Of a DNA stretch of 64,000 bases, positions 20,115 to 64,000 are shown one piece after another. The notes under the pieces were generated by a model, which ran no database searches, had not been told where the DNA came from, and saw only the letters and a program-made list of their open reading frames with translations. How positions within the stretch are numbered: position 1 is the first letter of the stretch; each line of letters opens with the position of its first letter. Position numbers and translations under genes: made by a program. This DNA is from Anaeramoeba ignava BMAN (Eukaryota > Protista > Anaeramoebae), in assembly GCA_028826165.1 (NCBI GenBank), contig JAPDFW010000015.1:16399-80398 (forward strand), in the 5' to 3' direction.

Positions 20115-20139
20115 AAAAAAAGACTGCAAAAAGCATTAA

Positions 20140-21182: not shown

Positions 21183-21291
21183 GATTCTTGTTATTTTTAT
21201 TAAAAATAATTTTTATTTTTGAAACATTTCATTTTTTTCATTTCAAAAAAAAAGCAAAAATAATCATAATCAAAAAAAAAAGAAAATAAAA

Positions 21292-35765: not shown

Positions 35766-38700
35766 ATGAAAAAACCACAAGAAATATGCACAATAATTGG
35801 GTCAAGTTTAGGATTTATTGGATCATTATTAATAATAATATTTTATTTATTATTCAATCAATTATATTTTCTTTATCGAAAATTAATATTTATTTTATCA
35901 GTTTATGATCTAATTCAATCAATAAGTTATTTATTACCTGGACATTCAAACAGAATTTTTTGTCGGATTCAATTTGAATTAATTACTGGTTTTGCAACTT
36001 GTGCTCAATTTTGGTCTGCTTCAATTTCTTTTATTTCTTTTCTTAAAGTTGTTAAAGAATTTGATGATAAAAAATTAAATAAAATTCAGAAATTTCTTCA
36101 TGTTGCCATGTGGTTTATTTCTATTACTTTTATTCTTCTTTCTTTTTTTGTTGGAAATCCTGAAGAATCTACTACTTATTGGTAATTTTTTTTCTTTAAT
36201 TGATAATTGAATTTTTTTTTCTTTAATTGAATAATTGATTTTTTTAATAGGTGCATGTCAACAGAAAAACCCATTATAATTGTAAATCTAAATCTAAATC
36301 TAAATATAAATATAAATATATAAATCTAAATATAAATATAAATCTAAATATAAATCTAAATATAAATCTAAATATAAATATAAATATAAATATAAATATA
36401 AATATAAATATAAATATAAATATAAATATAAATATAAATATAAATATAAATATATAAATATAAATATAAATATAAATATAAATATAAATATAAATATAAA
36501 TATAAATATAAATCTAAATATAAATCTAAATATAAATATAAATATAAATCTAAATATAAATATAAATATAAATATCATTACAAAATATAAATATAAATCT
36601 AAATCTAAATCTAAATATAAATATAAATCTAAAATCTAAATCTAAATCTAAAAATATAAATATAAATATAAATCTAAATCTAAATATAAATCTAAATATA
36701 AATATAAATATAAATATAAATATAAATATAAATCTAAATCTAAATCTAAATATAAATATAAATATAAAATATAAATCTAAATATAAATATAAATCTAAAT
36801 CTAAATATAAATATAAATATAAATATAAATATAAATCTAAATATAAATATAAATATAAATATAAATATAAATCTAAATCTAAATATAAAAATATAAATAT
36901 AAATATAAATATAAATCTAAATATAAATATAAATATAAATATAAATATAAATATAAATATAAATATAAATATAAATATAAATATAAATCTAAATCTAATT
37001 ATAAATATAAAATATAAATATAAATATAAATCTAAATATAAATATAAATCTAAATCTAAATATAAATATAAATATAAATCTAAATATAAATATAAATATA
37101 AATATAAATATAAATATAAATCTAAATATAAAAATCTAAATATAAATATAAATATAAATATAAATCTAAATCTAAATCTAAATCTAAATCTAAATCTAAA
37201 TCTAAATCTAAAAATAAAAACATAAATATAAAATATAAATATAAATATAAATATAAATATAAATATAAATATAAAATATAAATATAAATATAAAATAAAT
37301 CTAAATATAAAATATAATCTAAATCTAAATCTAAATATAAATCTAAATATAAATATAAATCTAAATCATAAATCTAAATCTAAATCACAAATAAATCTCA
37401 AATCTAAATCATCAAATATAAATATAAATATAAATCTAAATCAAAAATATAAATATAAATATAAATATAAATATAAATATAAATATAAATATAAAATAAA
37501 TATAAATATAAATATAAATCTAAAAAATATAAATATAAATCTAAATATAAATATAAATATAAATATAAATCTAAAATAAAAAATCTAAATATAAATATAA
37601 ATATAAATATAAATATAAATATAAATATAAATGAAAATATAAATATAAATATAAATATAAATATAAATATAAATATAAATATAAATATAAATATAAATAT
37701 TTAAAATATAAATCTAAATCTCAAATCTAAATCTAAATCTAAATATAAATCTAAATATAAATATAAATATAAATATAAATATAAATATAATATAAATATA
37801 AATATAAATATAAATATAAATATAAATATAAATATAAATAATCTAAATATAAATATAAATATAAATATAAATATAAATATAAATATAAATATAAATATAA
37901 ATATAAATATAAATCTAAATATAAATCTAAATATAAATATAAATATAAATCTAAATCTAAATCTAAATCTAAATATAAATATAAATATAAATATAAATAT
38001 AAAATATAAATATAAATATAAATCTAAATATAAATCTAAATATAAATATAAATATAAATATAAATATAAATATAAATATAAATATAAATATAAATATAAA
38101 TATAAATATAAATATAAATTGAAATATAAATATAAATATAATTAAATATAAATCTAAATTATAAAATTAAATAAAATATAAATATAAATCTAAAATATAA
38201 ATATAAATATAAATATAAATATAAATATAAATATAAATATAAATATAAATTAAATATAAATATAAATATAAATATAAATATAAATATAAATATAAATATA
38301 AATATAAATATAAATATAAATCTAAATATAAATCTAAATATAAATCTAAATATAAATATAAATATAAATATAAATATAAATATAAATATAAATCTAAATA
38401 TAAATATAAATATAATTACAAATATAAATTAAATTATAAATATAAATATAAATATAAATATAAATATAAATATAAATATAAATATAAATATAAATATAAA
38501 TATAAATATAAATATAAATATAAATCTAAATATAAATCTAAATATAAATATTAATATTTGAAATTGTTTTATTTTTAGCCTCTTTATTCAGTAAATTGGG
38601 TTTATATTATCGCTTGCTTCATTTTTTATATTTTTACTATTATTAAAATTAGAAAAATTATAAAATTAAATTCTCAAGGAAATTATGGACCAAAAACAAG

Positions 38701-40235
38701 TCAAATGAGTCAAGTTTGGATTCAATTTAGATTAAGTTTAATTCCTTTAATTTATATTTTAATTTTTATTCCAGCAACAATTAGAGTACAAATCAAAACC
38801 ATTCCTTTTAAGGAAATAAATTAAATCAAATAAATTGAATTGAAATAAATTAAAATTGGATTGAATTGAATTGAATTGAATTAAATAAAATTGAATAAAT
38901 TAAATAAATTGAATTGAATTGAATTGAATTAAATAAAATTGAATTGAATAAATTGATTTAAATTGAATTGAATTGAATTGATTTGAATTAAATTAAATAA
39001 ATTAAATTGAATTGAATTAAATTGAATTAATTGATTTAAATTGAATTAAATTGAATTAATTGAATTAAATTGAATTAATTGATTTAAATTAAATTGAATT
39101 AAATTGAATTGAATTGAATTAAATTAAATTGAATAAATTGAATTGAATAAATTGAATTGAATAAATTAAATTAAATTAAATTAAATTAAATTAAATTAAA
39201 TAAATTGAATAAATTGAATTGAATTAAATAAATTAAATTAAATTAAATTAAATTGAATTGAATTAAATTGAATAAATTAATTGAATTAAATTGAATTAAA
39301 TTGAATTGAATTAAATTAAATAAATTAATTGAATTAAATTGAATTGAAATTGGATTGAATTGAATTGAATTGAATTGAATAAATTAAATTAAATTAATTG
39401 AATAAATTAAATTAAATTAATTGAATAAATTAAATTGAATTAAATTAAATTAAATTGGATTGAATTAAATTAAATAAATTGAATTGAATTGATTTGATTT
39501 GAATTGAATTAAATTGAATTAAATTAAATTGAATTGAATTGAATTGAATTAAATTGAATTAAATAAATTAAATTGAATTGAATTGAATTAAATAAATTGA
39601 ATTAAATTAAATTGAATTGAATTAAATTGAATTAAATTAAATTGAATTAATTGATTTGATTTGAATTAAATTAAATTAAATTAAATAAATTGAATTAAAT
39701 TAAAATAAATTAAATAAATTAAATAAATAAATAAATTGAATTAAATGAATTGAATTGGATTGAATTGAATTGAATTGAATAAATTAAATTGAATTGAATA
39801 AATTAAATTGAATTGAATTGAATTAAATTGAATTGAATTGAATTAAATTAAATTAAATTAATTAAATTGAATTGATTAAATCAATTAAATTGAATAAATT
39901 TATTTATATTGATTTGATATTTTTAGAGGATTAGAACTTTGATAAATCCATCAGCAAATGATATCTTTTCTGTTGATATTATTCATTCCTTATTCGCTTC
40001 AACTCAAGGTTTTTGGGATTTTTGGATATTTGTTGTTTTTGATTTAGAAATGAGGAAAAAAATTGGAAATTGTTTTTCTTGTTATTCAAAAAATAGACAA
40101 AATGCAGCTCAATTAGATATTGAAGATTATAAAAATTTAAGAAATGAAACTTTTACTTTTTCAAAAGATCTTCTTAATTCAAAAGAAAGTGAAAGAAAAT
40201 CTTTAATCCAAAATGATGAATTAGAAAAAAATTAA
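35766..40235 (+). CDS. 7TM GPCR, copy 20 (divergent; microsatellite-expanded introns)
   Basis: Exons 35766-36181, 36251-36281, 38579-38785, 39927-40235. Confidence 0.88.
36282..38550. repeat. (AAATAT/AAATCT)n intronic microsatellite, about 2.3 kb
   Basis: Hexamer periodicity throughout intron 2 of copy 20. Confidence 0.95.
38815..39900. repeat. (AATTG/AATTA)n intronic microsatellite
   Basis: Pentamer periodicity in intron 3 of copy 20. Confidence 0.9.
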
Positions 40236-43926: not shown

Positions 43927-44029
43927 ATTTGAAAAAAATAAATCAAATTTCCTTTTTTTTAAAAACAATTTAATAAACCATTTAAAAATAATTTTAAAAT
44001 AATTAATTAATTTTAAAAATAATTTTAAG

Positions 44030-44088
44030 ATAATTAATCAATCAATAAAATCAATTAATTAATCAATCAATTAATCAATTAATCAATT

Positions 44089-44127
<39 letters not shown>

Positions 44128-44128
44128 T

Positions 44129-44163
<35 letters not shown>

Positions 44164-45685
44164 TAATCAATCAATTGTAATCAATTTAACCACCACCAAT
44201 AATCAATAATTAATCAATCAATCAATCAATCAACCAATAAATTAATTGTCAATCAATTGGTTCATTGTCAATACTAATAATTGGTAATTACCACCGGTAA
44301 TTGGTAATTGGTACTCCAAATCAATCAATAAATTGGTAAATTACAAATTACAAAAGTAATTGTAAAATAAATCAATTAAAATAATTACAAGCCAAATTAC
44401 CAATAATCAATTACAAAAAAACAATTTCAATTGTAAATTGTCCAATCACTAATAATTAAATAATTAATTACCAATTACCAATCAACATTCGGTTGTCAAT
44501 AAATGGTATTACTAATTTAATTACCAATTGTAATTAATTAATAATCATTAATTGTCAATTATCAATAATCGGTAATTGTCAATAATCACCACCAATAATT
44601 ACAATTGTCAATAATTAATCAATTATTTGTCCAATTATCATAATACTATTGTCAACCACCATTACGGTAATACCAATCAATTTAATTCAATTGGTAATAC
44701 CAATTACTATATCAATTGTCAATTACCAATTGTCATTCACCAATAATTTCAATTAGTAATTACCAATTGTCAATTAAATTTGTCACCAATTGTCAATAAT
44801 TGTCAAATTACCAATTGTCCATTAATCGGTAATTATCCAAATTACCAATTACTAATTAAATAAAAAATTGATAAATTAATTGTCAATACCGGGCATTAAT
44901 AATTACCAATAATTACCATTTAAAATTCCAAATACCAAATTGTACTAACAATACAATACAATTACCAATGTCAATAAATCAATAACAATTGTACAAATTA
45001 AAATTACCAAATTACCAAAATAATAAATTACCAATACCAATCCCAATTACCAAATTAATTAACAATTACAATTACCAATTATTAATCAATTAATAATCAC
45101 CCAATTACCAATTACCAATTACCAATTAATAATTACCAATAATGTCAATTACTAAATTGTCAATAATCACCAATTACCAATTACCAATTAATCAATACCA
45201 TTAATAATTACCAATAATTCAATCAATTAATTATTACCAATCAATTACCAATAATACCATTAATTACGGTAATTCAATTACCAATTAATAATTACCAATT
45301 ACCAATCAGTAATTGGTAATAACTAATAATTACCAAGTAATAATTACCATCGGTAATTATCGGTAATTACTAATCAATACAATTTACCAACCTGTCAATT
45401 CATCAATACCACCAATAAAAATTACCAATTAAATTACAATTTGTCAATAAATTATTGTCAATTACTAATTGTCGGTAATTCAATCAATCAATTGTCAATC
45501 AATTCAATTGTCAATCAATCAATCACCAACCAATCAATCAATTAATAATCAATTAATCAATTAATAATCAATCAATCAATCAATCAATCAATAATCAATC
45601 AATATTAATCAATCAATCAATCAATAAATCAATAAATCAATCAAATCAATCATCAATCATCAATCAATCAATTAATCAATTAATA
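44030..45685. repeat. (AATC)n microsatellite with degenerate centre
   Basis: Clean AATC runs at both edges; scrambled AATTACC/TTGTCAA-rich interior. Confidence 0.8.
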
Positions 45686-45824
45686 AATTAAATTTCAAAT
45701 TAAATTATTAATAAAATATTTTATCAATTTTATTAAATTGTTGGGAATAATTTTAGATTATTTGGATAAAAAAAATTGGTAAAATATATAAAATAAAATG
45801 AATTGTAAATTTAATTATTTAATA

Positions 45825-45825
45825 T

Positions 45826-45873
<48 letters not shown>

Positions 45874-46015
45874 TTTTTTCTTTCTTTCTTTCTTTCTTTC
45901 TTTTCTTTCTTTCTTTCTTTCTTTCTTTTTTTTCTTTCTTTTCTTTTTCTTTTCTTTCTTTTCTTTCTTTCTTTTTTTTCTTTCTTTCTTTCTTTCTTTT
46001 CTTTCTTTTTTCTTT
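45825..46015. repeat. (TTTC)n microsatellite
   Basis: Tetramer run just 3' of the ankyrin-BTB stop. Confidence 0.9.
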
Positions 46016-46018
46016 TAA

Positions 46019-48291
46019 TTAATTGAAAAAAATATTTTTAAAATAATCAAAATCAAGTAATAATTCTCCAATTAATGATTTTGGATTTAATTGATAATAA
46101 TCTTTTATATCAACATATTCTTCAAGATTTTCTTTTGTTATTTTTGTTTCTTCTTCAAATTCATCATGATAAAGGAAATAAATAAATTGGTTTATTGCTT
46201 CAAATGATTTTCTTGAATAATCATGAACTTGATTTGATTGATCTTGAACATTTAATTGAAACATTCCTTTAAATAATTCACTTCTTAATATTAATATTAA
46301 TTTATGAACTTTAATTTCTTTTTTTTCTTCAATAATTATTTTAAAATCTTTTGTTTCATTTTGTTGATATAATTTTGATAAATCTTTTATTATTCCTTTT
46401 CTTCCTTTTTTTGTTTCAATCCAATTTGATTCAATTCCAATTTGTTCAAAAATATCTTTCATTAATTCATTTTCTTGTTCTTCAAATTCATTTTCTTTTT
46501 CAATTTTGTTTTTCTTAAATTTTCAAATTCTTTTATTTTTCATCTTGTTTTGATTCTTTAATTTTTTTCATTTGATTTTGATAATTGATTAAATTTTGAA
46601 ATCTTTGAATAAAATAATCAAAATTAGTAAATCCAGTATAAAGAAAATTTAAAGCTAATTGAACATCTCTTTTTGGTTTTCTATTGCAAATATTGATAAA
46701 TTTTTGTAAAATTAATTTATCATTATCAAATCTTGTTAATAAAATTATTTTATGAACTTTAAATTTGAAATAATCATTTGTTTTAATTTCTAAATCTGTA
46801 AATTTTTCATTTTCATTTTCATTTTGACTTGATTTTAAAAAATTATTTAAATCTTCATTAATTGAATAAATTTTTGGAAATAAATTAATTATTTCTTCAT
46901 TGATTTGATCATATTTTAAATCAAAAATATTTCCCTCATTCATCATTAATAACTTGATTAATTGAATATTCTGATATTCACAAGCAATATGTAAAGCTGT
47001 TTGATTATAATTTGTTTTTGAATTAATATCAATTCCTGATGAAATTAAATATTTAATAATTTCAAGTGAAATATTTTGATTTTTACAAGCATAATGTAAA
47101 GCTGTTTCATTTGTTTTTGAATTAATATCAATTCCTGATGAAATTAAATATTTAATAATTTCAAGTGAAATATTTTCATTTTTACAAGCATAATGTAAAG
47201 CTGTTTGATTAGAATCTTTTGTTTTTGAATTAATATCAATTCCTGATAAAATTAAATATTTAATAATTTCAAGTGAAATATTTTCATTTTCACAAGCATA
47301 ATGTAAAGCTGTTTGATTATATTTTGTTTTTGAATTAATATCAATTCTTGATGAAATTAAATATTTAATAATTTCAAGTGAAATATTTTTATTTTCACAA
47401 GCATAATGTAAAGCTGTTTTATTTTGATTTGTTTTTGAATTAATATCAATTCCTGATAAAATTAAATATTTAATAATTTCAAGTGAAATATTTGATTTTC
47501 TTTCATATTTTGTTTTTGAATTAATATCAATTCTTGATAAAATTAAATATTTAATAATTTCAAGTGAAATATTTGGATTGAAACAAGCAATATGCAAAGC
47601 TGTTTCATTTTCATATTTTGTTTTTGAATTAATATCAATTCCTGATGAAATTAAATATTTAATAATTTCAAGTGAAATATTTTCATTTTTACAAGCATAA
47701 TGTAAAACTGTTTCATTTAGATATGTTTTTGAATTAATATCAATTCTTGATGAAATTAAATATTTAATAATTTCAAGTGAAAATTTTTTTTTCTACAAAC
47801 AAAATGTAAAGCTGTTTCATTATAATTTGTTTTTGAATTAATATCAATTCTTGATGAAATTAAATATTTAATAATTTCAAGTGAAATATTTTCATTTTTA
47901 CAAGCAATATGTAATGAATTTTTTCCTTTGTTATCAATCAAATTTGGATTAGCACCTTTTGAAATCAAAAATTGAATTATTTCTTTTGAAACTTGTTTTT
48001 CTATTGCAAAATGTAAAATTGGTTTTTGTTCTTTTATTAATTGATTTTTTGGAATTGATTCAATTTCTTTTAATTTTTGGAAATTGTTTTCTTCAATCAT
48101 TTTCCAAATATCTTTATTATCTTGATTATCTTGAATATCTTTATTATCTTGAATATCTTGAATATCTTGAATATCTTGAATATCTTTATTATCTTGAATA
48201 TCTTTAATATCTTTATTATTTTGAATATCTTGAATATCTTTATTATCTTGAATATCTTGAATATCTTAATATCTTTATTATCTTTATTCAT
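46019..48291 (-). CDS. Ankyrin-repeat (about 11) + two BTB domains protein; about 4 apparent frameshifts
   Basis: ORF pieces 48291-48097, 48100-47756, 47597-46533 and 46462-46019 join via single-base indels (about 48267, 47785, 46535, 46510). Repeats 'TALHYACxNxNISLEIIKYLISSGIDINSKT'; BTB motifs 'FKVHKIILLTR' and 'IKVHKLILILRSELF'. Confidence 0.8.
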
Positions 48292-48475
48292 TTTTGTTTT
48301 TCGTTTGTTTTAATTGTATTTGTGTTTGTATTTTTGTGTTTGTGTGTTTGTGTTTGTGTTTTAAAAAAAAAAGTAAAAAATGAAAAATGAAAAAAAGGAA
48401 AAAAAATTTTTTTATTTAGAAAAAAGAAGAAAAATAAAAATAAAATTTCCTCTTTTGTTCTTCTTTTCTTTTTCA

Positions 48476-49545
48476 ATTTGATTTTGATTTTGAATTTGAT
48501 TTTGATTTTGATTTTGATTTTGATTTTGATTTTGAATTTTGATTTTGATTTTGATTTTGATTTTGAATTTGAATTTTGATTTTGATTTTGATTTTAATTT
48601 TAATTTTGAATTTGAATTTGATTTTGATTTTGAATTTGAATTTGATTTTGATTTTGATTTTGATTTTGATTTTGATTTTGAATTTGATTTTGATTTTGAT
48701 TTTGATTTTGATTTTGATTTTGATTTTGATTTTGAATTTGATTTTGATTTTGATTTTGATTTTGATTTTGAATTTGATTTTTGATTTTTGATTTTTGATT
48801 TTGATTTTGATTTTGATTTTGATTTTGATTTTGATTTTGATTTTGATTTGATTTTGATTTTTTGATTTTGAATTTGATTTTGATTTTGATTTTTGATTTT
48901 GATTTTGATTTTGATTTGAATTTGATTTTGATTTTGATTTTGATTTTGATTTTGATTTTGATTTTAATTTTAATTTTGATTTTGATTTTGATTTTGATTT
49001 TGATTTTGATTTTGATTTTGATTTTGATTTTGATTTTGATTTTGATTTTGATTTTGATTTTGATTTTGATTTTGATTTTGATTTTGAATTTGATTTTGAT
49101 TTTGATTTTGATTTTGATTTTGATTTTGATTTTGAATTTTGAATTTGATTTTGATTTTAATTTTGATTTTGATTTTGATTTTGATTTTGAATTTTGATTT
49201 TAATTTTAATTTTGAATTTAATTTTGAATTTTGAATTTTGATTTTGATTTGATTTTGATTTTGATTTTGATTTTGATTTGATTTTGATTTTGATTTTGAT
49301 TTTGATTTTGATTTTGATTTGAATTTTGATTTTGATTTTGATTTTGATTTTGATTTTGATTTTGATTTTGATTTTGAATTTGATTTTGATTTTGAATTTG
49401 ATTTTGAATTTGAATTTGATTTTGATTTTGATTTTGATTTTCATTTTAATTTTTATTTTGAAGATTTTGATTTTGATTTTGATTTTGATTTTGATTTTGA
49501 TTTTGATTTTGATTTTGATTTTGATTTTCATTTTAATTTTGATTT
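48476..49545. repeat. (GATTTT)n intergenic microsatellite
   Basis: Hexamer run of about 1 kb. Confidence 0.95.
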
Positions 49546-49619
49546 TCTTCTAAATTTGTTTCTAAATTTGTTTCTAAATTTGTTTCTAAATTTGTTTTTC
49601 TTTTTCTTTTGTTTGTATT

Positions 49620-52600
49620 TTAATTTCTTCTAATCCTCTTTTGTTTAGAAAGTCTCCAAGAATCTTGATTTTGAAGAAACCTATCCCATAAAGGTAAAAG
49701 TTTTTCAGATTTTTTACGTCTAGTCAATTTAGTAGGATCAGCAATTCTATAAAACTTTGGGGCGAATTCAACGAGCCATTTAGGGTCAATAAAAGAAACA
49801 TTTCTCATATATTCCTTTGAAGTAAGAACGAGTTCGTGATAAACAACCCATTGAGGTTTAACTTGGAAAAGAGCTGAGCTTGGATGGATATAAACAGTTT
49901 GACCTTCAACAAGGGTTTTATAACCTTCTTGAGGGTCTTTTTTAGCGGCTTTTGTAAAATAGCCAGAAACAATTGATTTGATAATAGGAACAGTTGCAGT
50001 TCCACAAGAAACAACGTCCAATTTTTGCCGATCCAAAATTGCGAGAATTTGCTTTCTGATTTCTTGAGCTCTTCTGAGGGATCTTGGCTGGATAAAATTC
50101 TCAAAGCACCAAGGATTACTGAATTTGTTTCTTTTCCAGGATTCATAGACATTGAGGAGAGTAAGATGGTCGCCATCAGGAGAAATAAACTTTGCTTTTT
50201 TCTGGTCAGCTTGAGCCTGTTTTTCTTTTGGTCTATAAAAAACGGATTCAACGGAAAGCATTGAGACGATTGTAAGAATTTCCTCAGCACAACCGAAAGA
50301 AACGGAGGAAATAAGCATCTTAGACAAAGGGGGATCGAGGGGGAATTCAGCCATTTGTCTTCCCAATTTCGTAAGCAAACCCTCCTCATCGAGAGCGCCG
50401 AGCATGTAGAGCTGTTCCATGGCGGAAACGAGGGATTGAGTCGGCGGCGGATCCATGAAATTGAAGTGGAGGAGATCGTTGATTCCAAGCGCTTTGAGGG
50501 TGAGAACAGTTGTGCCGAGATTTGTGCGCTGGATCTCGGGAATTGTATTTGGGAACATTTCATTATGATAAGCAGATTCTGTGTAAAGTCGGAAACATTT
50601 TCCAGGACCTGTTCTTCCGGCTCGCCCTGCGCGCTGTCTTGCTGCTGCCTGTGAGATTGGTGTTACAACAAGCGAATCCATCCCCAATCTTGGGTTGTAG
50701 CATTTCTGCTTCACAAACCCTGGATCGATCACATAATATATTCCGTCAATTGTTAATGAAGTCTCCGCAATGTTTGTTGCGATAACAACCTTTCTTGATC
50801 CCTTTGGTGTTGGTTCGAAAATTCGGGTTTGGATCTCAGAAGGAAGCGCAGAATAAACGGGGAGGATCATCAGCTCAGGCGCTTTTGGACCAAGTGATTT
50901 TACACGCTCAAAAAGAATCTGACAAGCAGTGTCGATTTCTTCTTGTCCTGTTAAAAACAATAGGATATCTCCTGGTGGCTCTGCCAGATGGATCTGCATG
51001 ACTGTGATGAGCGCTGCGTCGAGATAGTCTGATTCGGGCTCTTTTGTGTATAAGATCTCAACGGGGTAGTTGCGACCTGGGATGGTGAAGATGGGACATT
51101 CGAAGAAGAAATCGGAAAACTTTTCTGCATCCAGTGTTGCCGAAGTAACAATTAATTTTAGATCAGGTCTTCTTTTCACCGTTTCTTTAAGAAGGCCAAA
51201 AAGAACATCAGTGTGCACCGTACGTTCGTGCGCTTCATCAAGCATTACAACGGAATATCCAGTCAGATCAGGGTCTATCAAGCACTCCCGAAGAAGCATT
51301 CCATCCGTCATGTATTTGATCACGGTTTCATTACTTGTGAAATCTTCAAATCTGATTGAATATCCAACCTCTTGACCCAAACGGCAGCCAAACTCCTCGC
51401 TAACTCTCTTCGCAACGCTCATTGCGGCGACTCGTCTTGGCTGCGTGCATCCGATCCGTCCTTCTTTTGCATATCCGTCTTCCGCAAGATATTGCGTGAT
51501 CTGCGTTGTTTTTCCTGATCCTGTTTCTCCTACGCAAATCAGCACTTGATTGTCCCTAATTGCGCTCATCAGTTCGTTTCGCAGCTTGAAGATCGGCAGT
51601 GATTCGCGCTGCTCCTTAATTGACAAATTGGTCTTCTTTCCGTATGCGACTGTTTTCCCAAAAGTGGATTTTTTCCATTCTGGAAGATCTTCTTGTGCCA
51701 TACCCAATCCGCGCAGATCCAGTGCCAAATGGCGTTCTCCTTCTTCCGGAAGTGGATCGATCCAAGGACGGTTAATATCTTTGGGGATACTTTCCAGCAT
51801 TTGGTTTCTTTACTGCTCTCGAACTTCCTTGCGTTCTTTTGCCAACGTAACTTGAGTCATTGCTGCGTCAACAAGTGATCCATCAGGATTTTTCAAGATT
51901 TTGATCGGCGATAGCGCCATTGTGTGCCGTGTTTGTCCCCGCAGAAATGTCGGCTCTTCATCGTTAAGCTCGATTTCTAGATCCTCCTCCATCTCGTCTT
52001 CCATATCTAGATCAAGTACTCCTGTTTCTTCGTTGTAGTTTGTTTGCTCACGAATGTCTAGAACCCCTGCAGACTCAAGCTGCTTTTGGATCCATCTTTC
52101 GGGTGTTGGAAGGTCTCGTCTTGTGTGCTTTTTTTCTTGCCTGATTGTTTTTGTTTGTGAATAAAAAAAAATTATGCAGTTGCGATATTTTGTTGTGATA
52201 TAATGATAATAATATAATAATAATAATATAATAATAATATAATAGAAATTTTTATGTTTGATGACTGTTTGTTTTTTTTTTCCGATTTTCGTTTTAATCA
52301 AAATAAATATAAATTTCAATAATATTTTTAAATTCAATTTAAATTTCAAATTCAATATAAATTTCTGAAATAAATAAAATTCGTTTTGATTTTCCTTGTT
52401 AAATGCATACATGCTTAACGTCATAGCGCCTTCATTCAAATCATTAGGTCTTGTTGGATTACTTCTTAATGGATCATATAAAGAAGTCTTCTTTTCAGAA
52501 TCAACAATTTCTCTTGGAAAAAGATCTTCACCATTTGATTGATCAGCCTCCTTCATTGATAAACTAATTTTACTTCCCGCATAAGCAAGAACTTTCACAA

Positions 52601-53261
52601 ACACTCTCTGCTTTTTATGTACAATTTCATGTGGATCTAAAACTCTTCCAGTTTTCTTCATTTGCGTGATGTGACAGAGCCCTTCTCGTTTTCCACGAAC
52701 TCCATCAAGTCGCACAAAACACCCAAAGTCTCTTATTCCAGTAACTTCTCCTGAATATATTTTATATTGTATGGGCTCTTCATCAATGGCTTCCCTTTCG
52801 TTATAAAAATGCGCATTTTTTTTCACTTCATCTTCTTCTTCAATTTTTTTCTCTATTTTATTTTTTTGATTCCAAGGGTTTTGAGTATTTCTGTGTCATG
52901 AATTATTTTCCCTATAATTATTATGATCATTATGATGATGTGAATGTGAATGATGTAAATGAGGTTTATGTTCTCTTTCTTTTAAATTTTCTTTTAAATT
53001 TTCTTTTAAATTCTCTTTTAAATTCTCTTTCTTTTTTGCATTCGGATGTAATCTACTTATTATATTATATATATTTGTTACAAAATTTTCTGGAAATTCT
53101 GCTTGTTTTTCTTTTAAATTTTGTTTAAATTCTTCCAATGTTTTTGAATTTTCCCAAATTTCTACAATAAATTCTGCAACAAATTTTTGTTTAATTCCAA
53201 CATTATTTTCAAGTTCAGTACAAACTTTTGAAATTAAAGAAATGAATTTTAGTTGTTGCAT
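49620..53261 (-). CDS. DHX8: Pre-mRNA splicing DEAH-box helicase DHX8/Prp22 (N-terminal PWI-like, S1, helicase); two in-frame stops
   Basis: N-term '[12 protein letters not shown]', S1 domain '[15 protein letters not shown]...REGLCHITQ', '[14 protein letters not shown]', [33 protein letters not shown]. Intron 52410-52141 (GTATGC...AG). In-frame TGA at 52898-52896 and TAA at 51812-51810. Confidence 0.93.
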
Positions 53262-53933: not shown

Positions 53934-54164
53934 TTTTTTAAAAATGAAAATAAAAATGAAATTTTTCAATTAATTTTTAAATCTCCTAAAATAAATTTTT
54001 TTTTCTCTTTTTTTTTGATCAAAAAAATAATCAATAAACAAAATTCTCCTTATTTTCTTTTAATTCAAAATAATTCATTTTCTAATCCCCTCTTTTATTA
54101 TTTTTTATTTTTTCTTTATTCCAAAAAAAATCAAAATCCAAAAAAAATAAAATTCAATTAATCA

Positions 54165-54880
54165 AATATAAAAAATGAGAATAAGTTTAATTTAATATTT
54201 AATTTAGAAATTAATTTAAAAAATGATTTATTATTTAATTTTATTATTAAATTTATAATTTATTAATTTATTTTTCAATATTTTCTTTTTTCAATATTAA
54301 TCAATGAAATATAAAAAATAAGAATAAGTTTAATTTAATATTTAATTTAGAAATCAATTTAAAAAATAATTTAATATTTAATTTTATTATTAAAATAATA
54401 ATTTATTAATTTATTTTTCAATATTTTCTTTTTCAATATTAATCAATGAAATATAAAAATAAGAATAAGTTTAATTTAATATTTAATTTAGAAATTAATT
54501 TAAAAATAATTTATTATTTAATTTTATTATTAAAATAATAATTTATTAATTTATTTTTCAATATTTTCTTTTTCAATATTAAACAATCAAATATAAAAAA
54601 TGAGAATAAGTTTAATTTAATATTTAATTTAGAAATTAATTTAAAAAATAATTTATTATTCAATTTTATTATTAAAATAATAATTTATTAATTTATTTTT
54701 CAATATTTTCTTTTTCAATATTAATCAATGAAATATAAAAATAAGAATAAGTTTAATTTAATATTTAATTTAGAAATTAATTTAAAAATAATTTATTATT
54801 TAATTTTATTATTAAAATAATAATTTATTGTTTTATTTTTAAATATTTTCTTTTTTCAATATTAATCAATGAAATACAAA
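54165..54880. repeat. Tandem repeat, about 141-bp unit x5
   Basis: GAATAAGTTTAATTTAATATTTAATTTAGAAA recurs at about 54179, 54322, 54463, 54604 and 54745. Confidence 0.9.
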
Positions 54881-54889
54881 AAATAAATA

Positions 54890-55560
54890 ATCAAAAATAT
54901 CAATTTAAGCAATGAAAATATTAATTCAGTTTGAAATAAAAGAAATTCAATTTAAATTATTATTAAATAGTATTCAAATTCAATTTTTTTCTTTATTAAA
55001 ACATTTCATTAATTTTATTAAATTTTTGGGAATTATTTTGTATTATTTTAAATAAAGAAATATTAATAAAATATATAAAATAGGATTAATTCTGAATTTA
55101 ACTATTTAATATTCTTTATTCCATTTTTGAAATAAATTAATTAAAACATTTTATTAATTTTATTAAATTTTTGGGAATTATTTTATATTATTTTAAATAA
55201 AAGAAATATTAATAAAATATATAAAAATAGAATTAATTCTGAATTTAATTATTTAATATTCTTTATTCCATTTTTGAAATAAATTAATTAAAATATTTTA
55301 TTAATTTTATTAAATTATTGGGAATTATTTTGTATTATTTTAAATAAAGAAGTATTAATAAAATGTATAAAATAGAATTAATTCTAAATTTAATTATTTA
55401 ATATTCTTTATTTCATTTTTGAAATAAATTAATTAAAATATTTTATTAATTTTATTTAATTTTTTGGGAATTTATATTATTTTAAATAAAGAAATATTAA
55501 TAAAATATATAAAAGTAAAATTCTAAATTTAACTATTTAATATTCTTTATTCCATTTTTA
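54890..55560 (-). repeat. Dispersed AT-rich element with about 145-bp tandem units (copy B, inverted relative to 25.2 kb)
   Basis: TTGGGAATT recurs at about 55027, 55171, 55318 and 55465; reverse-complement similarity to 25205-25730. Confidence 0.75.
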
Positions 55561-55949: not shown

Positions 55950-58900
55950 ATGAGTGATTCTCCAAAAGAAATTAATTCAACAAAAAAATCAAATTCAAAT
56001 TCAAAACCAAAACCAAATTCAAAACATCATTCAAAACAAATTGATTCAAAACAAATTGATTCAAAACAGAATTCAAATTCAAAATCAAATAAGAAAAATC
56101 AAAATCAAAATCAAAATCAAAATCAAAATCAAAACAAAAATCAAAATCAAAATCAAAATCAAAATCAAAATCAAAATCAAAATCAAAATCAAAATCAAAA
56201 TATAAATATAAATCAAAATCAAATCCAAAATCAAAATCAAAATCAAAATCAAAAATATAAATCAAAATCAAAACAAAATCAAAATCAAAATATAAATATA
56301 AATCAAAATCAAATCCAAAATCAAAATCAAAATCAAAATCAAAATCAAAATCAAAATATAAATCAAAATCAAATTCAAAATCAAATTCAAAATCAAAATC
56401 AAAATCAGATTCAAATTCAAAATATAAATCAAAATCAAAATCAAAACCAAATTCAAAATCAAATTCAAAATCAAAATCAAAATCAAAATCAAAATCAAAA
56501 TCAAAATCAAAATCAAATCCAAAAAATTACATTTCAAGAAATTTATTCAAAAGAAAAATCACAAAAAATCGAAATATCAAAATTATATCAATTTCCTTCT
56601 CAAGAACTTAATAAATTTTTAATTTGTGAACTTCTTTCAAATTATAAAACAATGTTTCAAAATGAAGAAAATTGTGATTTTATAATTTATGTTGGAAAAA
56701 ATAATCAAAAAATTCCTTGCCATAAATCAATTCTTAATTCAAGATCAAGATTTTTTTATAAAAATCACCATGAAAAATCAGAAACTGAAGAATTATATCT
56801 TCCACAATTTGAATATGATATTGTTAAACCAATAATTTCATTTCTTTATGATTTAGAATTTAAATTTGATTTAAACAAATTTGAAAAATATTTTCAACTT
56901 TCAAAATATTTTAAATTAACAAGTTTAATAATCAAAATTGAAAAAGAAGTTTCAGAACAAATTAATGAAAAAAATGTTATTCCAATTTATTTCAAAAGTA
57001 TTTCCATTGAATCAATTTATCTTTCCAATATTTGTGAAAAGTTTATTAAAGAAAATATTAATAAAATTATTGAAGAAAATCAAACAGGATCAATAAATGA
57101 TAAAGAATTGAAAGAAATTATTCAAATTATTCAATCAACACCAAAAGAAAGCAAAATTGATTTAATTTGGAAATTATCTCAAGATTGGAAAAATAAATTT
57201 AAAAAAAGCAATAAAAATTTAATCGATAAAGAGAATATATTGATCCAATTCAAATTCAAGAACTCAATAATGAAATTCGAGATTTTTATTTTATTATTGA
57301 TAATATTAAAAATAATCAATTTATTTACTTGAATCCAAGAATTCAAAATAATCCAATTTTACCTTCAACTGATCAATTTCAATTAATAAATGAAAAAAAT
57401 AAAGAATTACAACAAGAAAATCAAAAACAAAAAAATAAGATCATAAAAATGAAAAAAGAATTAGAAATTTTTAAACCCGAAAGAAAAGCTCATCAAGATT
57501 TAGAAAATTTTAAAAATCAAATTTCAAATTTAAATGAAAGTAAATTATTTTTATTTTTATTTTAATTTTAATATAAATTATTTCCCAATTCAAAAATTCA
57601 AAAATCAAAAATCAAAATCAAAAAAGAATCTATTGAAGAAACAATAATATATATGAAACAATATCCAATTAATCAAAAAATTCAAGAAAATGGATGTTTT
57701 ATTTTACAAAAATTTGCAAAAGAAAATGAAGGTAAAATATTTATTTTTTTGAAACAATTTTTGAATAATAATATTAAAAATAATAATAAAAATAATTGAA
57801 ATTTAAAAGATAATCAAATAGAAATAAAAAAATTTAATGGAATTGAACCTCTTATAAATGTAATGAATAATTTCCCAAATAATGAAGATATTCAAATAAA
57901 AGCATCTGAAGCTTTATTAATATTTTCAGGAGGATTAAAAAGTAAATTAATTTCTTTTTTTAACAAATCAAAAATCAAAAAAAAAAATGAATTATTTGCA
58001 AATTTAAATCTCTTTCTTTTTCTTCTTTCACAAAACAAAAAGGTGAAGAAATAGAAAATCGAGAATTACAAGGAATTGAAATTTCTAAATTAAATGGAAT
58101 TAAAACAATTATTAATACAATCAATAATTATCCAAATAATCAAATTATTCAAGAAAAATCTATTTCAATTTTAACTAATATTGCAATTAATTCAGGTAAG
58201 AAAATTTATAAGAAAAAACAAATATTTATTTCCATAATTTTTACATTTCCAATTCTCATCAAAAATTTTAAAAATTTAATTTATAAAATGAAATGAGAAA
58301 ATTAATTTCAATTTCAATTTCAATTTCCAAAAAAAATAGAAAACAGAATTGAAATTAGAAATTTAAAAGGAATTGAACCTATTATTAAAGCAATGAATAA
58401 TTTCCCAAATAATCAAGATATTCAAAAATATGGATGTTGGGCTTTAAAGAATATTGCTGCTGATAATGGTAATTAAAAATAATCAAAAATCCAAATATTT
58501 TAATCAATTATTTATTATTAATTATTAATCAAAAAATATTTAATTAATTTCAATTTATTTCCAAAAAAATCCAAAAAAATTAATTTCAATTTCAATTTCA
58601 ATTTATTTCCAAAAAAATAGAAAACAAAATTGAAATTAGAAATTTAAAAGGAATTGAACCTATTATTAAATTAATGAATAATTTCCCAAATAATCAAGTT
58701 ATTCAAAAATATGGATGTTGGGCTTTATCGAATATTGCTGCTGATAATGGTAATTAAAAATATTCAAAAATCCAAATATTTTAATCAATTATTTATTATT
58801 AATTATTAATCAAAAAAATATTTAATCAATTTATTTCCAAAAAAATCCAAAAAAAAATAATTTCAATTTCAATTTCAATTTCAATTTCAATTTTCCAAAA

Positions 58901-61900
58901 AAATAGAAAACAGAATTGAAATTAGAAATTTAAAAGGAATTGAACCTATTATTAAATCAATGAATAATTTCCCAAATAATAAAGATATTCAAGAAAAAGG
59001 ATGTTGGGCTTTAAATAATATTGCTGCTGATAATGGTAATTAAAAATATTCAAAAATCCAAATATTTTAATCAATTATTTATTATTAATTATTAATCAAA
59101 AAAATATTTAATCAATTTCAATTCATTTCCAAAAATCCAAAAAAAAATTAATTTCAATTTCAATTTCAATTTCAATTTCAATTTCAATTTTCAAAAATAG
59201 AAAACAAAATTGAAATTAGAAATTTAAAAGGAATTGAACCTATTATTAAATCAATGAATAATTTCCCAAATAATCAAGATATTCAAGAAAAAGGATGTTG
59301 GGCTTTATGGAATATTGCTGCTAATAATAATGGTAAATAAAAATAAAAAATAAATAAAATTATAAATTAAAATATTTTAATCAATTATTTATTATTAATT
59401 ATTAATCAAAAATATTTAATTAATTTATTTCCAAAAATCCAAAAAAAATTAATTTCAATTTCAATTTCAATTTATTTCCAAAAAAATAGAAAACAAAATT
59501 GAAATTAGAAATTTAAAAGGAATTGAACCTATTATTAAATCAATGAATAATTTCCCAAATAATCAAGATATTCAAGAAAAAGGATGTTGGGCTTTATTGA
59601 ATATTGCTGCTAATAATAATGGTAAATAAAAATAAAAAATAAATAAAATTATAAATTAAAATATTTTAATCAATTATTTATTATTAATTATTAATCAAAA
59701 AATATTTAATTAATTTCAATTTATTTCCAAAAATCCAAAAAAATTAATTAATTAATTAATTTCAATTTCAATTTCAATTTATTTCCAAAAAAAATAGAAA
59801 ACCAAATTGAAATTAGAAATTTAAAAGGAATTGAACCTATTATTAAATCAATGAATAACTTCCCAAATAATCAAGATATTCAAGAAAATGGATGTGGAGC
59901 TTTAAATAATCTGTCTTTTAATGAAGGTAAATAAAAATAAAACATAAATAAAATTATAAATTAAAATATTTTAATCAATTATTTATTATTAATTATTAAT
60001 CAAAAAATATTTAATTAATTTCAATTTATTTCCAAAAATCCAAAAAAAAATTAATTTCAATTTCAATTTCAATTTCAATTTCAATTTTCAAAAAAATAGA
60101 AAACAAAATTGAAATTAGAAATTTAAAAGGAATTGAACCTATTATTAAATCAATGAATAACTTCCCAAATAATCAAGTTATTCAAGAAAAAGGATGTGGA
60201 GCTTTATTGAATATTGCTAATGATAATGGTAAATAAAAATAATCAAAAATCCAAATATTTTAATCAATTATTTATTATTAATTATTAATCAAAAAATATT
60301 TAATTAATTTCAATTTATTTCCAAAAAAATCCAAAAAAAAATTAATTTCAATTTTAATTTCAATTTTCAAAAAAATAGAAAACCAAATTGAAATTAGAAA
60401 TTTAAAAGGAATTGAACCTATTATTAAATCAATGAATAACTTCCCAAATAATCAAGTTATCCAAGAAAATGGATGTGGAGCTTTAAAGAATATTGCTTTT
60501 GATAAAGGTAAATAAAAATAAAAAATAAATAAAATTATAAATTAAAATATTTTAATCAATTATTTATTATTAATTATTAATCAAAAAATATTTAATTAAT
60601 TTCAATTTATTTCCAAAAAAATCCAAAAAAAAATTAATTTCAATTTCAATTTCAATTTCAATTTATTTCCAAAAAAATAGAAAACAAAATTGAAATTAGA
60701 AATTTAAAAGGAATTGAACCTATTATTAAATCAATGAATAACTTCCCAAATAATCAAGTTATTCAAGAAAAAGGATGTGGAGCTTTATCGAATATTGCTC
60801 TTGATAATGGTAAATAAAAATAATCAAAAATCCAAATATTTTAATCAATTATTTATTATTAATTATTAATCAAAAAATATTTAATTAATTTCAATTTATT
60901 TCCAAAAATCCAAAAAAAAATTAATTTCAATTTCAATTTATTTCCAAAAAAATAGAAAACAATATTGAAATTAGAAATTTAAAAGGAATTGAACCTATTA
61001 TTAAATCAATGAATAATTTCCCAAATAATCAAGATATTCAAAAACAAGGATGTTGGGCTTTATTGAATATTGCTGCTTTTGATAAAGGTAAATAAAAATA
61101 AAAAATAAATAAAATTATAAATTAAAATATTTTAATCAATTATTTATTATTAATTATTAATCAAAAAATATTTAATCAATTTCAATTTATTTCCAAAAAA
61201 ATCCAAAAAAATTAATTTCAATTTCAATTCCAATTTCAATTTATTTTCCAAAAAATAGAAAACAAAATTGAAATTAGAAATTTAAAAGGAATTGAACCTA
61301 TTATTAAATCAATGAATAATTTCCCAAATAATAAAGATATTCAAGAAAAAGGATGTGGAGCTTTATTGAATATTGCTGCTGATAATGGTAAATAAAAATA
61401 AAACATAAATAAAATTATAAATTAAAATATTTTAATCAATTATTTATTATTAATTATTAATCAAAAAAATATTTAATTAATTTCAATTTATTTCCAAAAA
61501 AATCCAAAAATTAATTTCAATTTCAATTTCAATTTCAATTTATTTCCAAAAAAATAGAAAACGAAATTGAAATTAGAAATTTAAAAGGAATTGAACCTAT
61601 TATTAAATCAATGAATAATTTCCCAAATAATCAAGTTATTCAAGAAAAAGGATGTTGGGCTTTAAATAATCTGTCTTTTAATGAAAGTAATTAAAAAATA
61701 ATCAAAAATCCAAATATTTTAATTAATTATTTATTATTAATTATTAATCAAAAAAATATTTAATCAATTTCAATTTATTTCCAAAAAAATCCAAAAAAAA
61801 TTAATTTCAATTTCAATTTCAATTTCAATTTCAATTTATTTCCAAAAAAATAGAAAACAAAATTGAAATTAGAAATTTAAAAGGAATTGAACCTATTATT

Positions 61901-64000
61901 AAATCAATGAATAATTTCCCAAATAATGAAGATATTCAAAAACAAGGATGTTGGGCTTTAAATAATCTGTCTTTTAATGAAGGTAAATAAAAATAATCAA
62001 AAATCCAAATATTTTAATCAATTATTTATTATTAATTATTAATCAAAAATATATTTAATCAATTTCAATTTATTTCCAAAAATCCAAAAAAAATTTAATT
62101 TCAATTTCAATTTCAATTTCAATTTATTTCCAAAAAAATAGAAAACAAAATTGAAATTAGAAATTTAAAAGGAATTGAACCTATTATTAAATCAATGAAT
62201 AATTTCCCAAATAATCAAGTTATTCAAGAAAAAGGATGTGGAGCTTTATCGAATATTGCTGTTGATAATGGTAAATAAAAATAATCAAAAATCCAAATAT
62301 TTTAATCAATTATTTATTATTAATTATTAATCAAAAAAATATTTTAATTAATTTCAATTTATTTCCAAAAAAATCCAAAAAAATTTAATTTCAATTTCAA
62401 TTTCAATTTCAATTTCAATTTTCAAAAAAATAGAAAACGAAATTGAAATTAGAAATTTAAAAGGAATTGAACCTATTATTAAATCAATGAATAATTTCCC
62501 AAATAATAAAGATATTCAAGAAAAAGGATGTTGGGCTTTAAATAATCTGTCTTTTAATAATGGTAAATAAAAATAATCAAAAATCCAAATATTTTAATCA
62601 ATTATTTATTATTAATTATTAATCAAAAAAATATTTTAATTAATTTCAATTTATTTCCAAAAATCCAAAAAAAAATTAATTTCAATTTCAATTTCAATTT
62701 CAATTTCAATTTTCAAAAAAATAGAAAACCAAATTGAAATTAGAAATTTAAAAGGAATTGAATCTATTATTAAATCAATGAATAATTTCCCAAATAATCA
62801 AGATATTCAAAAACAAGGATGTGGAGCTTTATGGAATATTGCTTTTAATGAAGGTAATTAAAAAATAATCAAAAATCCAAATATTTTAATCAATTATTTA
62901 TTATTAATTATTAATCAAAAAAATATTTAATTAATTTCAATTTATTTCCAAAAATCCAAAAAAAAATTAATTTCAATTTCAATTTATTTCCAAAAAAATA
63001 GAAAACCAAATCGAAATTAGAAATTTAAAAGGAATTGAACCTATTATTAAATCAATGAATAATTTCCCAAATAATCAAGATATTCAAGAAAAAGGATGTG
63101 GAGCTTTAAAGAATATTGCTGCTTTTAATAATGGTAAATAAAAATAATCAAAAATCCAAATATTTTAATCAATTATTCATTATTAATTATTAATCAAAAA
63201 AATATTTAATCAATTTCAATTTATTTCCAAAAAAATCCAAAAAAAATTAATTTCAATTTCAATTTATTTCCAAAAAAATAGAAAACCAAATTGAAATTAG
63301 AAATTTAAAAGGAATTGAACCTATTATTAAATCAATGAATAATTTCCCAAATAATAAAGATATTCAAAAACAAGGATGTTGGGCTTTAAATAATCTGTCT
63401 TTTAATGAAGGTAATTAAAAAATAAACAAAAATCCAAATATTTTAATCAATTATTTATTATTAATTATTAATCAAAAAATATTTAATTAATTTCAATTTA
63501 TTTCCAAAAATCCAAAATAATTAATTTCAATTTTAATTTCAATTTCAATTTCAATTTCAATTTCAATTTATTTCCAAAAAAATAGAAAACAAAATCGAAA
63601 TTAGAAATTTAAAAGGAATTGAACCTATTATTAAATCAATGAATAATTTTCCAAATAATCAAGATATTCAAAAACAAGGATGTTGGGCTTTATTGAATAT
63701 TGCTGCTGATAAAGGTAAATAAAAATAAAAAACAAATAAAATTATAAATTAAAATATTTTAATCAATTATTTATTATTAATTATTAATCAAAAAATATTT
63801 AATCAATTTCAATTTATTTCAAAAATCAAAAATTAATTTTTGTTAATTTTCAATTTCAATTTCAATTTTATTTCCAAAAACAAAAACACTCAAATTAGTG
63901 AAAATTAAATTTAAAAGGAAGTAATTAACTTATTATTAAATCGTGGATAATTTAAAATAATCAGGATTATTGAAAAAGGATGTAAAGAACTCAGAATGTG
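55950..64000 (+). CDS. Q/N-rich - BTB - armadillo-repeat protein, multi-exon, runs off the window end
   Basis: Exon 1 55950-57539 (frameshift at about 57230) with (QN)n and BTB 'CDFIIYVG...IPCHKSILNSRSRFF...IISFLY'. Divergent ARM exons at 57627-57731, about 57810-57941 and about 58043-58195, then 19 ARM cassette exons 58340-63714. Confidence 0.85.
58320..64000 (+). repeat. Tandem exon+intron cassette array, about 280-300-bp period, 19 intact units plus 1 degraded
   Basis: Exons of 129 or 132 nt start at 58340, 58621, 58907, 59201, 59490, 59798, 60100, 60379, 60681, 60956, 61259, 61558, 61854, 62142, 62434, 62725, 63002, 63282 and 63586. Each is flanked by AAATAG| and |GTAA. Confidence 0.93.

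Follow-up and report, generated by a model that had tools for sequence, protein, structure and literature searches.

A 64,000-nucleotide stretch of the Anaeramoeba ignava BMAN genome (contig JAPDFW010000015.1, here C17, positions 16,399 to 80,398 of the forward strand; hereafter the window) ends within a gene in which an exon encoding a BTB domain is followed by an array of cassette exons, each encoding one armadillo (ARM) repeat. The explanation that we consider probable, though by no means secure, is that this gene is a 3'-truncated and possibly frameshifted member of a very large A. ignava family of BTB-BACK/coiled-coil/ARM proteins, which would dock a cullin, bind peptides and recombine their binding pockets. 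In this gene, an exon-plus-intron unit of about 289 bp has been amplified in tandem. According to the proposed scheme, the BTB-BACK dimer would dock a Cullin-3-like cullin, and the long ARM groove would bind extended substrate peptides for ubiquitination, each repeat accommodating approximately two residues, as is the case for designed ARM proteins. New pocket combinations and, with them, new specificities would arise across hundreds of paralogous repeats through conversion and unequal crossing-over of the cassettes. If this is true, nature has built modular ARM peptide binders of the kind pursued in protein engineering, with a separate pocket in each interchangeable repeat, and has wired them to ubiquitin-ligase modules.

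Tandem Repeats Finder (TRF) identified the array at positions 58298-63880 with a period of 289 and 19.1 copies. By anchoring on the conserved core, we located 19 cassette exons on the forward strand at 58340-63714, including 15 exons of 129 nt and 4 exons of 132 nt, and the coordinates, sizes and phase 1-1 coincide with those given by a first-pass annotation of the same DNA that had been made from the sequence letters. All 19 exons have ...aaatag on their 5' side and gtaa[a/t]t on their 3' side, and their phase-1 frame, for which one base is borrowed from the preceding exon, is open in 19 out of 19 cases; the cassette introns are 146-176 nt long. The peptide consensus of the annotation and the five forms that it listed for codon 37 (AAG/TCG/AAT/TGG/TTG) agree exactly with ours. 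Its assignment of one ARM repeat to each exon also held: a single cassette exon matches the Pfam Arm profile PF00514 with 21.2 bits (cut-off, 20.6 bits; the paralog proteins score 46-54 bits), and it corresponds to one armadillo repeat in the Pfam register because the match spans profile positions 4-41 of 41. Four exons are located upstream of the array on the same strand, namely exon 1, whose open reading frame (ORF) contains a BTB/POZ domain at residues 233-336 (PF00651, E=4.4e-15, 56.2 bits), and exons 2-4, which are in phase 1-1 and encode an N-terminal cap and two divergent ARM repeats. Exon 1 was delineated from the ORF, the Pfam BTB match, frame analysis, and the AlphaFold2 (AF2) model with its Foldseek matches to BTB-BACK structures. 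Complete sister genes finish with a dedicated cap exon bearing the stop codon, and there is no such exon in the window copy. The gene comprises the following features:

55985-56517 (+): (AAAATC)n microsatellite of about 89 copies, identified by TRF and translation, which encodes the poly-(N/Q) head of exon 1
55950-57539 (+): exon 1, with the start codon, an N/Q-rich low-complexity head, the BTB-BACK module and a coiled-coil segment; ends in phase 1 at GAAA/gtaaat
56646-56957 (+): BTB/POZ domain, PF00651
57234-57236 (+): 1-nt deletion relative to four paralogs, GAGAA-TAT versus GAAAAATAT, from pairwise alignments to loci L021, L022, L015 and L012
57627-57731 (+): exon 2, 105 nt, phase 1-1, AG/GT flanks; N-terminal capping helix pair of the ARM domain
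57810-57941 (+): exon 3, 132 nt, phase 1-1; divergent ARM repeat with a weak Pfam Arm match
58043-58195 (+): exon 4, 153 nt, phase 1-1; divergent ARM repeat conserved in the sister loci
58340-58468 (+): cassette exon 1, 129 nt; source of the Pfam Arm match of 21.2 bits
58621-58749 (+): cassette exon 2, 129 nt
58907-59035 (+): cassette exon 3, 129 nt
59201-59332 (+): cassette exon 4, 132 nt
59490-59621 (+): cassette exon 5, 132 nt
59798-59926 (+): cassette exon 6, 129 nt
60100-60228 (+): cassette exon 7, 129 nt; served as the genome query
60379-60507 (+): cassette exon 8, 129 nt
60681-60809 (+): cassette exon 9, 129 nt
60956-61087 (+): cassette exon 10, 132 nt
61259-61387 (+): cassette exon 11, 129 nt
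61558-61686 (+): cassette exon 12, 129 nt; ends in A instead of G
61854-61982 (+): cassette exon 13, 129 nt
62142-62270 (+): cassette exon 14, 129 nt
62434-62562 (+): cassette exon 15, 129 nt
62725-62853 (+): cassette exon 16, 129 nt
63002-63133 (+): cassette exon 17, 132 nt
63282-63410 (+): cassette exon 18, 129 nt
63586-63714 (+): cassette exon 19, 129 nt
63715-64000 (+): last intron, followed by part of a 20th cassette that is degenerate and indel-ridden, was identified by alignment to the exon consensus and runs into the contig end

The lead-in encoded by exon 2 is also present in the paralogs P0014 and P0002. Since cassette exon 12 ends in A, the split codon that follows it reads AAA.

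The cassettes were folded in the context of P0014 (residues 505-835), a database paralog with cassettes nearly identical to those of the window. The AF2 model has a mean predicted local distance difference test score (pLDDT) of 97.2 and a predicted template modelling score (pTM) of 0.93. In cassette numbering, helix 1 (H1) is formed by residues -1 to 8, helix 2 (H2) by residues 12-21, helix 3 (H3) by residues 26-39, and the loop by residues 40-42, the helices in each repeat being 9, 10, and 14 residues long, respectively. Because H1 begins at the last residue of the preceding cassette, the exon border falls precisely between repeats. The top Foldseek matches are designed armadillo proteins (4rv1, 6s9o, 5mfm), Vac8, and beta-catenin, with template modelling (TM) scores of 0.62-0.80. 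Modelling thus supports the identification of the cassettes as canonical ARM repeats.

Among the 19 window cassettes, nucleotide diversity (pi) is 0.089 in exons and 0.061 for substitutions in introns, and the overall ratio of non-synonymous to synonymous diversity (pN/pS) is 1.64. The two parts of the repeat differ in this respect: codons 1-25, which encode H1-H2, have a pN of 0.018 versus a pS of 0.053, whereas codons 26-43, which encode H3 and the loop, have a pN of 0.197 versus a pS of 0.062, as expected from the first-pass description of mainly non-synonymous variation in the last helix. Segregating columns are distributed accordingly, with 9 out of 74 (12%) in H1-H2, 20 out of 54 (37%) in H3 and the loop, and 30 out of 146 (21%) in introns (H3 versus introns, p=0.026; H3 versus H1-H2, p=0.0012). 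The same description of the introns as almost invariant was overstated, given these 30 segregating columns, the pi of 0.061, two types of 5' part and many indels. Every cassette intron (58859-63569) contains, 15-45 nt before the 3' splice site, an (AATTTC)n run with a copy number of about 3-8; differences in intron length are largely due to this microsatellite, which might favour slippage or unequal exchange.

For the analysis of entropy and of the ratio of non-synonymous to synonymous substitution rates (dN/dS) we used 237 register-checked cassettes from 21 loci, comprising the window and 20 sister loci. Their peptides are distinct in 229 cases, and the six residues of the H3 face occur in 165 different signatures. 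Amino-acid entropy is highest at codon 37 (2.98 bits), followed by codons 31, 30, 34, 3, and 27, and codons 2, 11, 12, 16, 22, 24, 25, 28, 29, and 36 are near-invariant. The hypervariable positions thus comprise H3 codons 27, 30, 31, 34, 37, and 38, as well as codon 3 and the H3-H1 loop; the six H3 codons constitute one face of the helix, since they are spaced by i, i+3/4 and i+7. Per-site dN/dS, a check proposed in the first-pass annotation, was estimated as a rough parsimony count on a FastTree tree of the 237 cassettes: relative to the global dS, dN is 5.3 at codon 37, 3.3 at codon 3, 3.0 at codon 31, 2.65 at codon 30, and 2.6 at codon 34, compared with 0.58 for the other 34 codons; the six hypervariable codons considered with their own dS give only 1.8. 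Thus, the ARM scaffold is under purifying selection, and one face of H3 has non-synonymous diversity well above the synonymous and intronic level.

These patterns bear on an alternative that we hold to be improbable, namely the neutral concerted evolution of an ordinary scaffold protein, with no adaptive diversification and no role in an E3 ubiquitin ligase. Under this scenario, the genome, being extremely AT-rich and prone to repeats, let the array grow through unequal crossing-over and slippage during replication, and conversion merely reshuffled H3 differences that separate old types of repeat or mark surface positions under relaxed constraint. Such an origin agrees with the variation within the window, where a small number of alleles per site (for example, TGG/GGA at codon 34 or the NNLSFNE tail block) are combined in many ways, and with the value of 1.8 obtained from the sites' own dS. 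However, relaxed constraint predicts dN/dS near 1 rather than a pN that is three times both pS and intron pi; moreover, the variable codons are strictly periodic on one face while adjacent codons are almost invariant, and 165 H3-face signatures among 237 cassettes far exceed what a few ancestral types would provide.

The placement of the hypervariable codons can be compared with designed ARM binders, where side-chain pockets are made by H3 residues of neighbouring repeats. In these binders, a selected Tyr pocket is ascribed to residues 29, 30, and 33, and the library admits Gly at two positions since natural ARM proteins carry Gly there (PMC11228518); peptide-induced shifts in designed ARM proteins likewise concentrate in H3 (PMC10684580). 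When the H3 core of the cassette (...IQEKGCWALxNIA) is aligned with the stretch NEQILQEALWAL encoded by a published primer (PMC11228518), codons 30, 31, and 34 correspond to positions 29, 30, and 33, respectively; this alignment is our own and depends on a one-residue insertion in the loop. The H3 Asn (codon 38) is present in 189 out of 237 cassettes, while codon 34 encodes Trp in 50 and Gly in 129 of them. Taken together, the alignments support a correspondence of the hypervariable codons with side-chain pockets of peptide-binding ARM proteins, as anticipated by the earlier proposal that variable H3 residues line a peptide groove. As the H3 Trp is mostly replaced, the mode of binding may differ from that of classical ARM proteins.

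The cassette units are mosaics produced by recombination or gene conversion and exchanged both within and between loci, in line with the duplication and conversion invoked by the first-pass annotation. In the window array, the four-gamete test is failed by 204 out of 300 informative pairs of sites. The minimum number of events (Rm) is at least 10, so that no fewer than 10 recombination or conversion events are required within a unit of about 290 bp. The window units are no closer to one another than to units of contigs C46, C93, C123, and C61, and a search for collinearity of the window array with its nearest sister arrays showed that the best sister matches are not collinear. This suggests exchange between loci or repeated reshuffling.

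The BTB region was modelled together with its paralogs (mean pLDDT 75, about 90 in the core), and the first Foldseek matches of the resulting BTB-BACK model are vaccinia A55-Cul3, KBTBD2-CUL3, KBTBD4, gigaxonin, SPOP, KLHL11/22, and KEAP1, with the BTB-BACK chains of A55-Cul3, KBTBD2/4, gigaxonin, and KLHL11 matched at TMq 0.56-0.62. By its predicted structure, the BTB-BACK module of the window is similar in fold to Cullin-3 substrate adaptors. The Pfam BACK domain is listed only for paralog P0008. The A. ignava genome encodes at least eight cullin loci above the Pfam cut-off, and a Cullin-3-type BTB, as suggested in the first-pass annotation, is consistent with both the modelled fold and these cullins. 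Protein searches with the BTB ORF returned solely A. ignava proteins (74 and 71% identity). In the PDB, the best sequence match of the BTB domain is CP190, and that of the ARM region is Vac8 (E=5e-17 to 5e-18). The neutral scenario would accommodate these matches by a BTB that only oligomerises and an ARM domain that serves as a Vac8- or catenin-like tether, since CP190 is not a CUL3 adaptor and Vac8 is a tether rather than an E3 subunit; it is contradicted by the BTB-BACK fold, which matches CUL3 adaptors first, and by the recurrence of the cassette on RING E3 proteins.

With regard to that recurrence, the paralog P0014 has a head composed of RING, protein kinase and SH3 domains before its ARM cassettes, P0152 is named 'RING-type E3 ubiquitin transferase', and in P0013 and at locus L026 (C103:213000-222000) the ARM cassette precedes RCC1-BTB modules. 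The cassettes in P0014, P0152, P0013, P0164, P0170, and locus L026 are up to ~80-95% identical. Since it is found with different heads and tails, the cassette array behaves as a portable module among ubiquitin-ligase-related genes, and its recurrent pairing with ubiquitin-ligase modules supports a role in substrate recognition. Within the window itself, the interval 46085-46303 on the reverse strand matches the C-terminal BTB region of P0013 in tblastn (47% identity, E=2.6e-6), and probably represents a second BTB-type gene about 10 kb upstream of the BTB-ARM gene.

A genome search for sister loci, another of the checks put forward earlier, revealed many of them. In the 42.8-Mb genome we found at least 386 matches to the BTB region and at least 456 to the cassette unit, and the BTB-ARM protein query identified at least 68 BTB loci. 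The 42-residue cassette query yielded 1,424 first-look candidates; among the 150 that were scored, all have E values below 2e-15 and 149 are free of stop codons. The window and 20 sister loci, whose cassettes were extracted with an nhmmer profile, contain 259 cassettes, each of them comprising one repeat per 129/132-nt phase 1-1 exon, with a BTB exon upstream of most arrays; intron lengths are locus-specific, at about 60-80, 94, 150-180 or 220 nt. Splicing is documented by the transcriptome-derived EukProt protein P0056, which is 100% identical over residues 1-450 to contig C74 (locus L027, C74:230752-235113): its blocks are exact on C74 and their ends coincide with phase-1 GT...AG introns at ARM-repeat borders, thus phase-1 splicing at repeat borders occurs in the family. 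The exact match to C74 reaches residue 550; beyond it, P0056 follows a paralog on contig C24 at 58-92% identity, and it may be a chimeric transcript assembly or reflect a strain or locus difference. The A. ignava nuclear genome has an A+T content of 80.65% and was assembled from Nanopore and Illumina reads (PMC11550330). The NCBI names of family members are 'protein aardvark' or 'hypothetical protein', and armadillo, aardvark or the BTB family are not mentioned in the searched main text and supplements of the genome paper (PMC11550330). Nor is the cassette family described in the A. pumila preprint, and no description of an ARM exon-cassette family was found in the literature searched. The present analysis thus flags a very large family in a published genome where it is annotated only under these two names.

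The window copy is incomplete. Contig C17 stops at window position 64000 (C17 base 80398), i.e., within the array, thus 19 cassettes is a lower bound, and the final ~120 nt of the contig are a degenerate, indel-ridden cassette copy. Furthermore, exon 1 has a 1-nt deletion at ~57235, between the BTB-BACK part and the coiled coil, whereas the ORF is unbroken in four paralogs; the window copy is therefore either a recent pseudogene or affected by a long-read error beside an A run. The BTB fusion described in the first-pass annotation stands insofar as the BTB domain is encoded upstream of the array; as assembled, the BTB-BACK part and the remainder of the protein lie in different frames, and the fusion passes through a frameshift.

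These features suggest another alternative, in which the family may well be functional but the window locus is either dead, as a pseudogene, or a fragment whose structure (the unit count, the copy at the contig end and the frameshift) partly results from mis-assembly. We regard it as a less likely account, albeit one that deserves serious consideration. In its favour are the deletion relative to four paralogs, the error-like copy into which the array runs at the contig end, two other arrays that adjoin contig ends at C69 position 1 and C33 position 248, and the use of Nanopore reads for the assembly (PMC11550330). On the other hand, open frames and AG/GT sites are preserved in 19 out of 19 cassette exons, the pN/pS of the scaffold is 0.35, and the deletion adjoins a short A run, a typical site of long-read error. 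Arrays of 22-26 cassettes lie wholly inside the long contigs C46 and C61, indicating that long arrays are not merely artefacts of contig ends. Assembly expansion of fewer units was rejected as the main explanation, because all 19 units differ from one another and such 22-26-unit arrays sit inside long contigs. In the two arrays at contig ends (C69:1-531 and C33:248-823), the 3' parts are missing, and the cassette family has probably interrupted the assembly repeatedly.

Several considerations weigh against our preferred reading of the gene as a member of a cullin-docking family with recombining pockets. For dN/dS, we relied on a home-made parsimony count whose tree was built from 120-nt sequences that recombine; recombination inflates the counts at polymorphic sites, and the sites' own dS lowers the estimate for the six hypervariable codons as given above. 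Groove exposure of the variable sites is deduced from helical periodicity and alignment, and the ligand-contacting Trp of importin-alpha-type repeats is replaced, mostly by Gly, in ~80% of cassettes. Finally, with its frameshift in exon 1 and absent 3' end, the window copy may be a dead member of the family.

Because every cassette exon is in phase 1-1, in-frame exon skipping is possible in principle, and this property underlies the proposal of an intracellular receptor for immunity or symbiont sensing that would gain additional isoforms through skipping. We give this proposal little credence, although it was raised in the first-pass annotation and has some attractive aspects: symmetric exons keep the frame after any skip, the hypervariable ligand-face pattern resembles that of candidate immune receptors of the brown alga Ectocarpus (PMC3341825), and the host, indeed a protist as that annotation assumed, harbours sulfate-reducing bacterial symbionts as well as many acquired genes of foreign origin (PMC11550330). 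Nevertheless, nothing connects the family with symbionts, viruses or infection, it is absent from the text of the genome paper (PMC11550330), and we saw none of the signalling domains that are typical for immune receptors (NB-ARC, TIR, death fold). Just as speculative is a broader system of combinatorial intracellular recognition, in which hundreds to more than 1000 interchangeable ARM cassettes with different pockets would be continually re-sorted by mitotic unequal crossing-over and conversion, possibly together with skipping. The result would be an open-ended set of BTB- or RING-linked ubiquitin-ligase receptors against targets that evolve fast, for example the proteins of mobile elements, viruses, symbionts or bacterial prey. 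If true, such a system would represent in nature what modular armadillo binders are in engineering, and would resemble innate immunity in a metamonad.

Elsewhere in the window, the sequence just 5' of the BTB-ARM gene contains two intergenic tandem arrays with a local G+C content of ~9%, one at 54156-54886 (141 bp x 5.2 copies, 94% identity) and the other at 54995-55559 (145 bp x 3.9 copies, 92% identity). Further upstream, a DHX8/Prp22-type DEAH helicase (Pfam DEAD, Helicase_C, HA2, and OB_NTP_bind) is encoded at 49620-52826 on the reverse strand by a gene with a G+C content of ~45% versus a background of ~17%. It spans two adjacent ORFs, 49620-51800 and 51810-52826, the second of which carries an AT-rich low-complexity insert; Anaeramoeba has been reported to be rich in inteins (PMC10710043). 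Blocks of extreme GC skew are located at 20001-22000 (+0.66), 36001-40000 (-0.55/+0.46), 44001-46000 (-0.59), and 48001-50000 (+0.47) in very AT-rich sequence, and a microsatellite at ~48862-49633 translates as (LI)n or (KI)n; the skew blocks are probably strand-biased microsatellites.

Among known systems, the ARM region is closest in sequence to Vac8 and beta-catenin, which are its best PDB matches (Foldseek TM 0.77 to Vac8); however, these proteins have 9-12 individually diverged repeats, no BTB domain and no tandem exon cassettes. Orthology to Dictyostelium aardvark/beta-catenin was rejected, since the name is an annotation transfer and the family described here has a BTB N-terminus and cassette arrays. 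Importin-alpha and designed ARM proteins (PMC11228518, PMC10684580) share the 42/43-residue three-helix repeat (TM 0.65-0.69 to 5mfm and 6s9o), the mostly conserved H3 Asn and the engineered pocket positions with which codons 30, 31, and 34 align, but differ in the H3 Trp, which is kept in few cassettes of the A. ignava family, and in length, the window array being much longer (at least 23 repeats).

From the functional side, BTB-BACK Cul3 adaptors (KLHL/KBTBD Kelch proteins, SPOP, gigaxonin, and A55) have the same order of an N-terminal BTB, a helical BACK/3-box and a C-terminal recognition domain. In these adaptors, recognition is mediated by a Kelch propeller or MATH domain, whereas the window gene has a coiled coil and a long ARM solenoid; sequence identity to the window module is only 11-19%, and cullin binding is here a prediction. 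Human ARMC5 is an ARM and BTB CUL3 adaptor for RPB1 and SREBF (PMC9226510, PMC9462479), and it likewise combines a substrate-binding ARM domain with a CUL3-recruiting BTB. In ARMC5, however, the ARM domain is N-terminal and the BTB C-terminal, while the window gene encodes the BTB first and the ARM repeats after it; ARMC5 also exists as one gene copy, has few repeats and lacks a cassette array. Membership in the ARMC5 family was rejected, as two paralogs score 56.9 and 38.4 bits against ARM_ARMC5 (PF24768; cut-off, 79.9 bits) and the domain order is reversed.

The closest evolutionary parallel is found in Ectocarpus, for which the first-pass annotation had named a real precedent: in the ROCO genes, exons of 72 nt that encode one leucine-rich repeat (LRR) each are shuffled and the concave face is under positive selection (PMC3341825). 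The ROCO-LRR and NB-ARC-TPR families of this alga (PMC3341825, PMC11378527) share with the A. ignava family one repeat per symmetric exon of fixed length, dynamic exon duplication and shuffling, a ligand-binding face with an excess of non-synonymous change, and paralogs that are numerous and clustered. They differ in the repeat unit (72-nt LRR or TPR exons versus 129/132-nt phase-1 ARM exons), in the attached modules (ROC-COR GTPase or NB-ARC effectors versus BTB or RING ubiquitin-ligase modules), and in belonging to another eukaryotic supergroup than Anaeramoeba (Metamonada). Homology was rejected because the Pfam content here is BTB and ARM only, thus the A. ignava family is an analogue rather than a member. 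If our preferred reading is true, it adds an independent case, in a third fold and a distant lineage, of the one-repeat-per-exon design discussed for candidate LRR/TPR receptors of brown algae, and strengthens the view of symmetric-exon repeat arrays as a general route to recognition diversity. Overall, the BTB-BACK CUL3 adaptors and ARMC5-CUL3 are the nearest known systems in function, and the Ectocarpus ROCO genes are the nearest evolutionary analogue.

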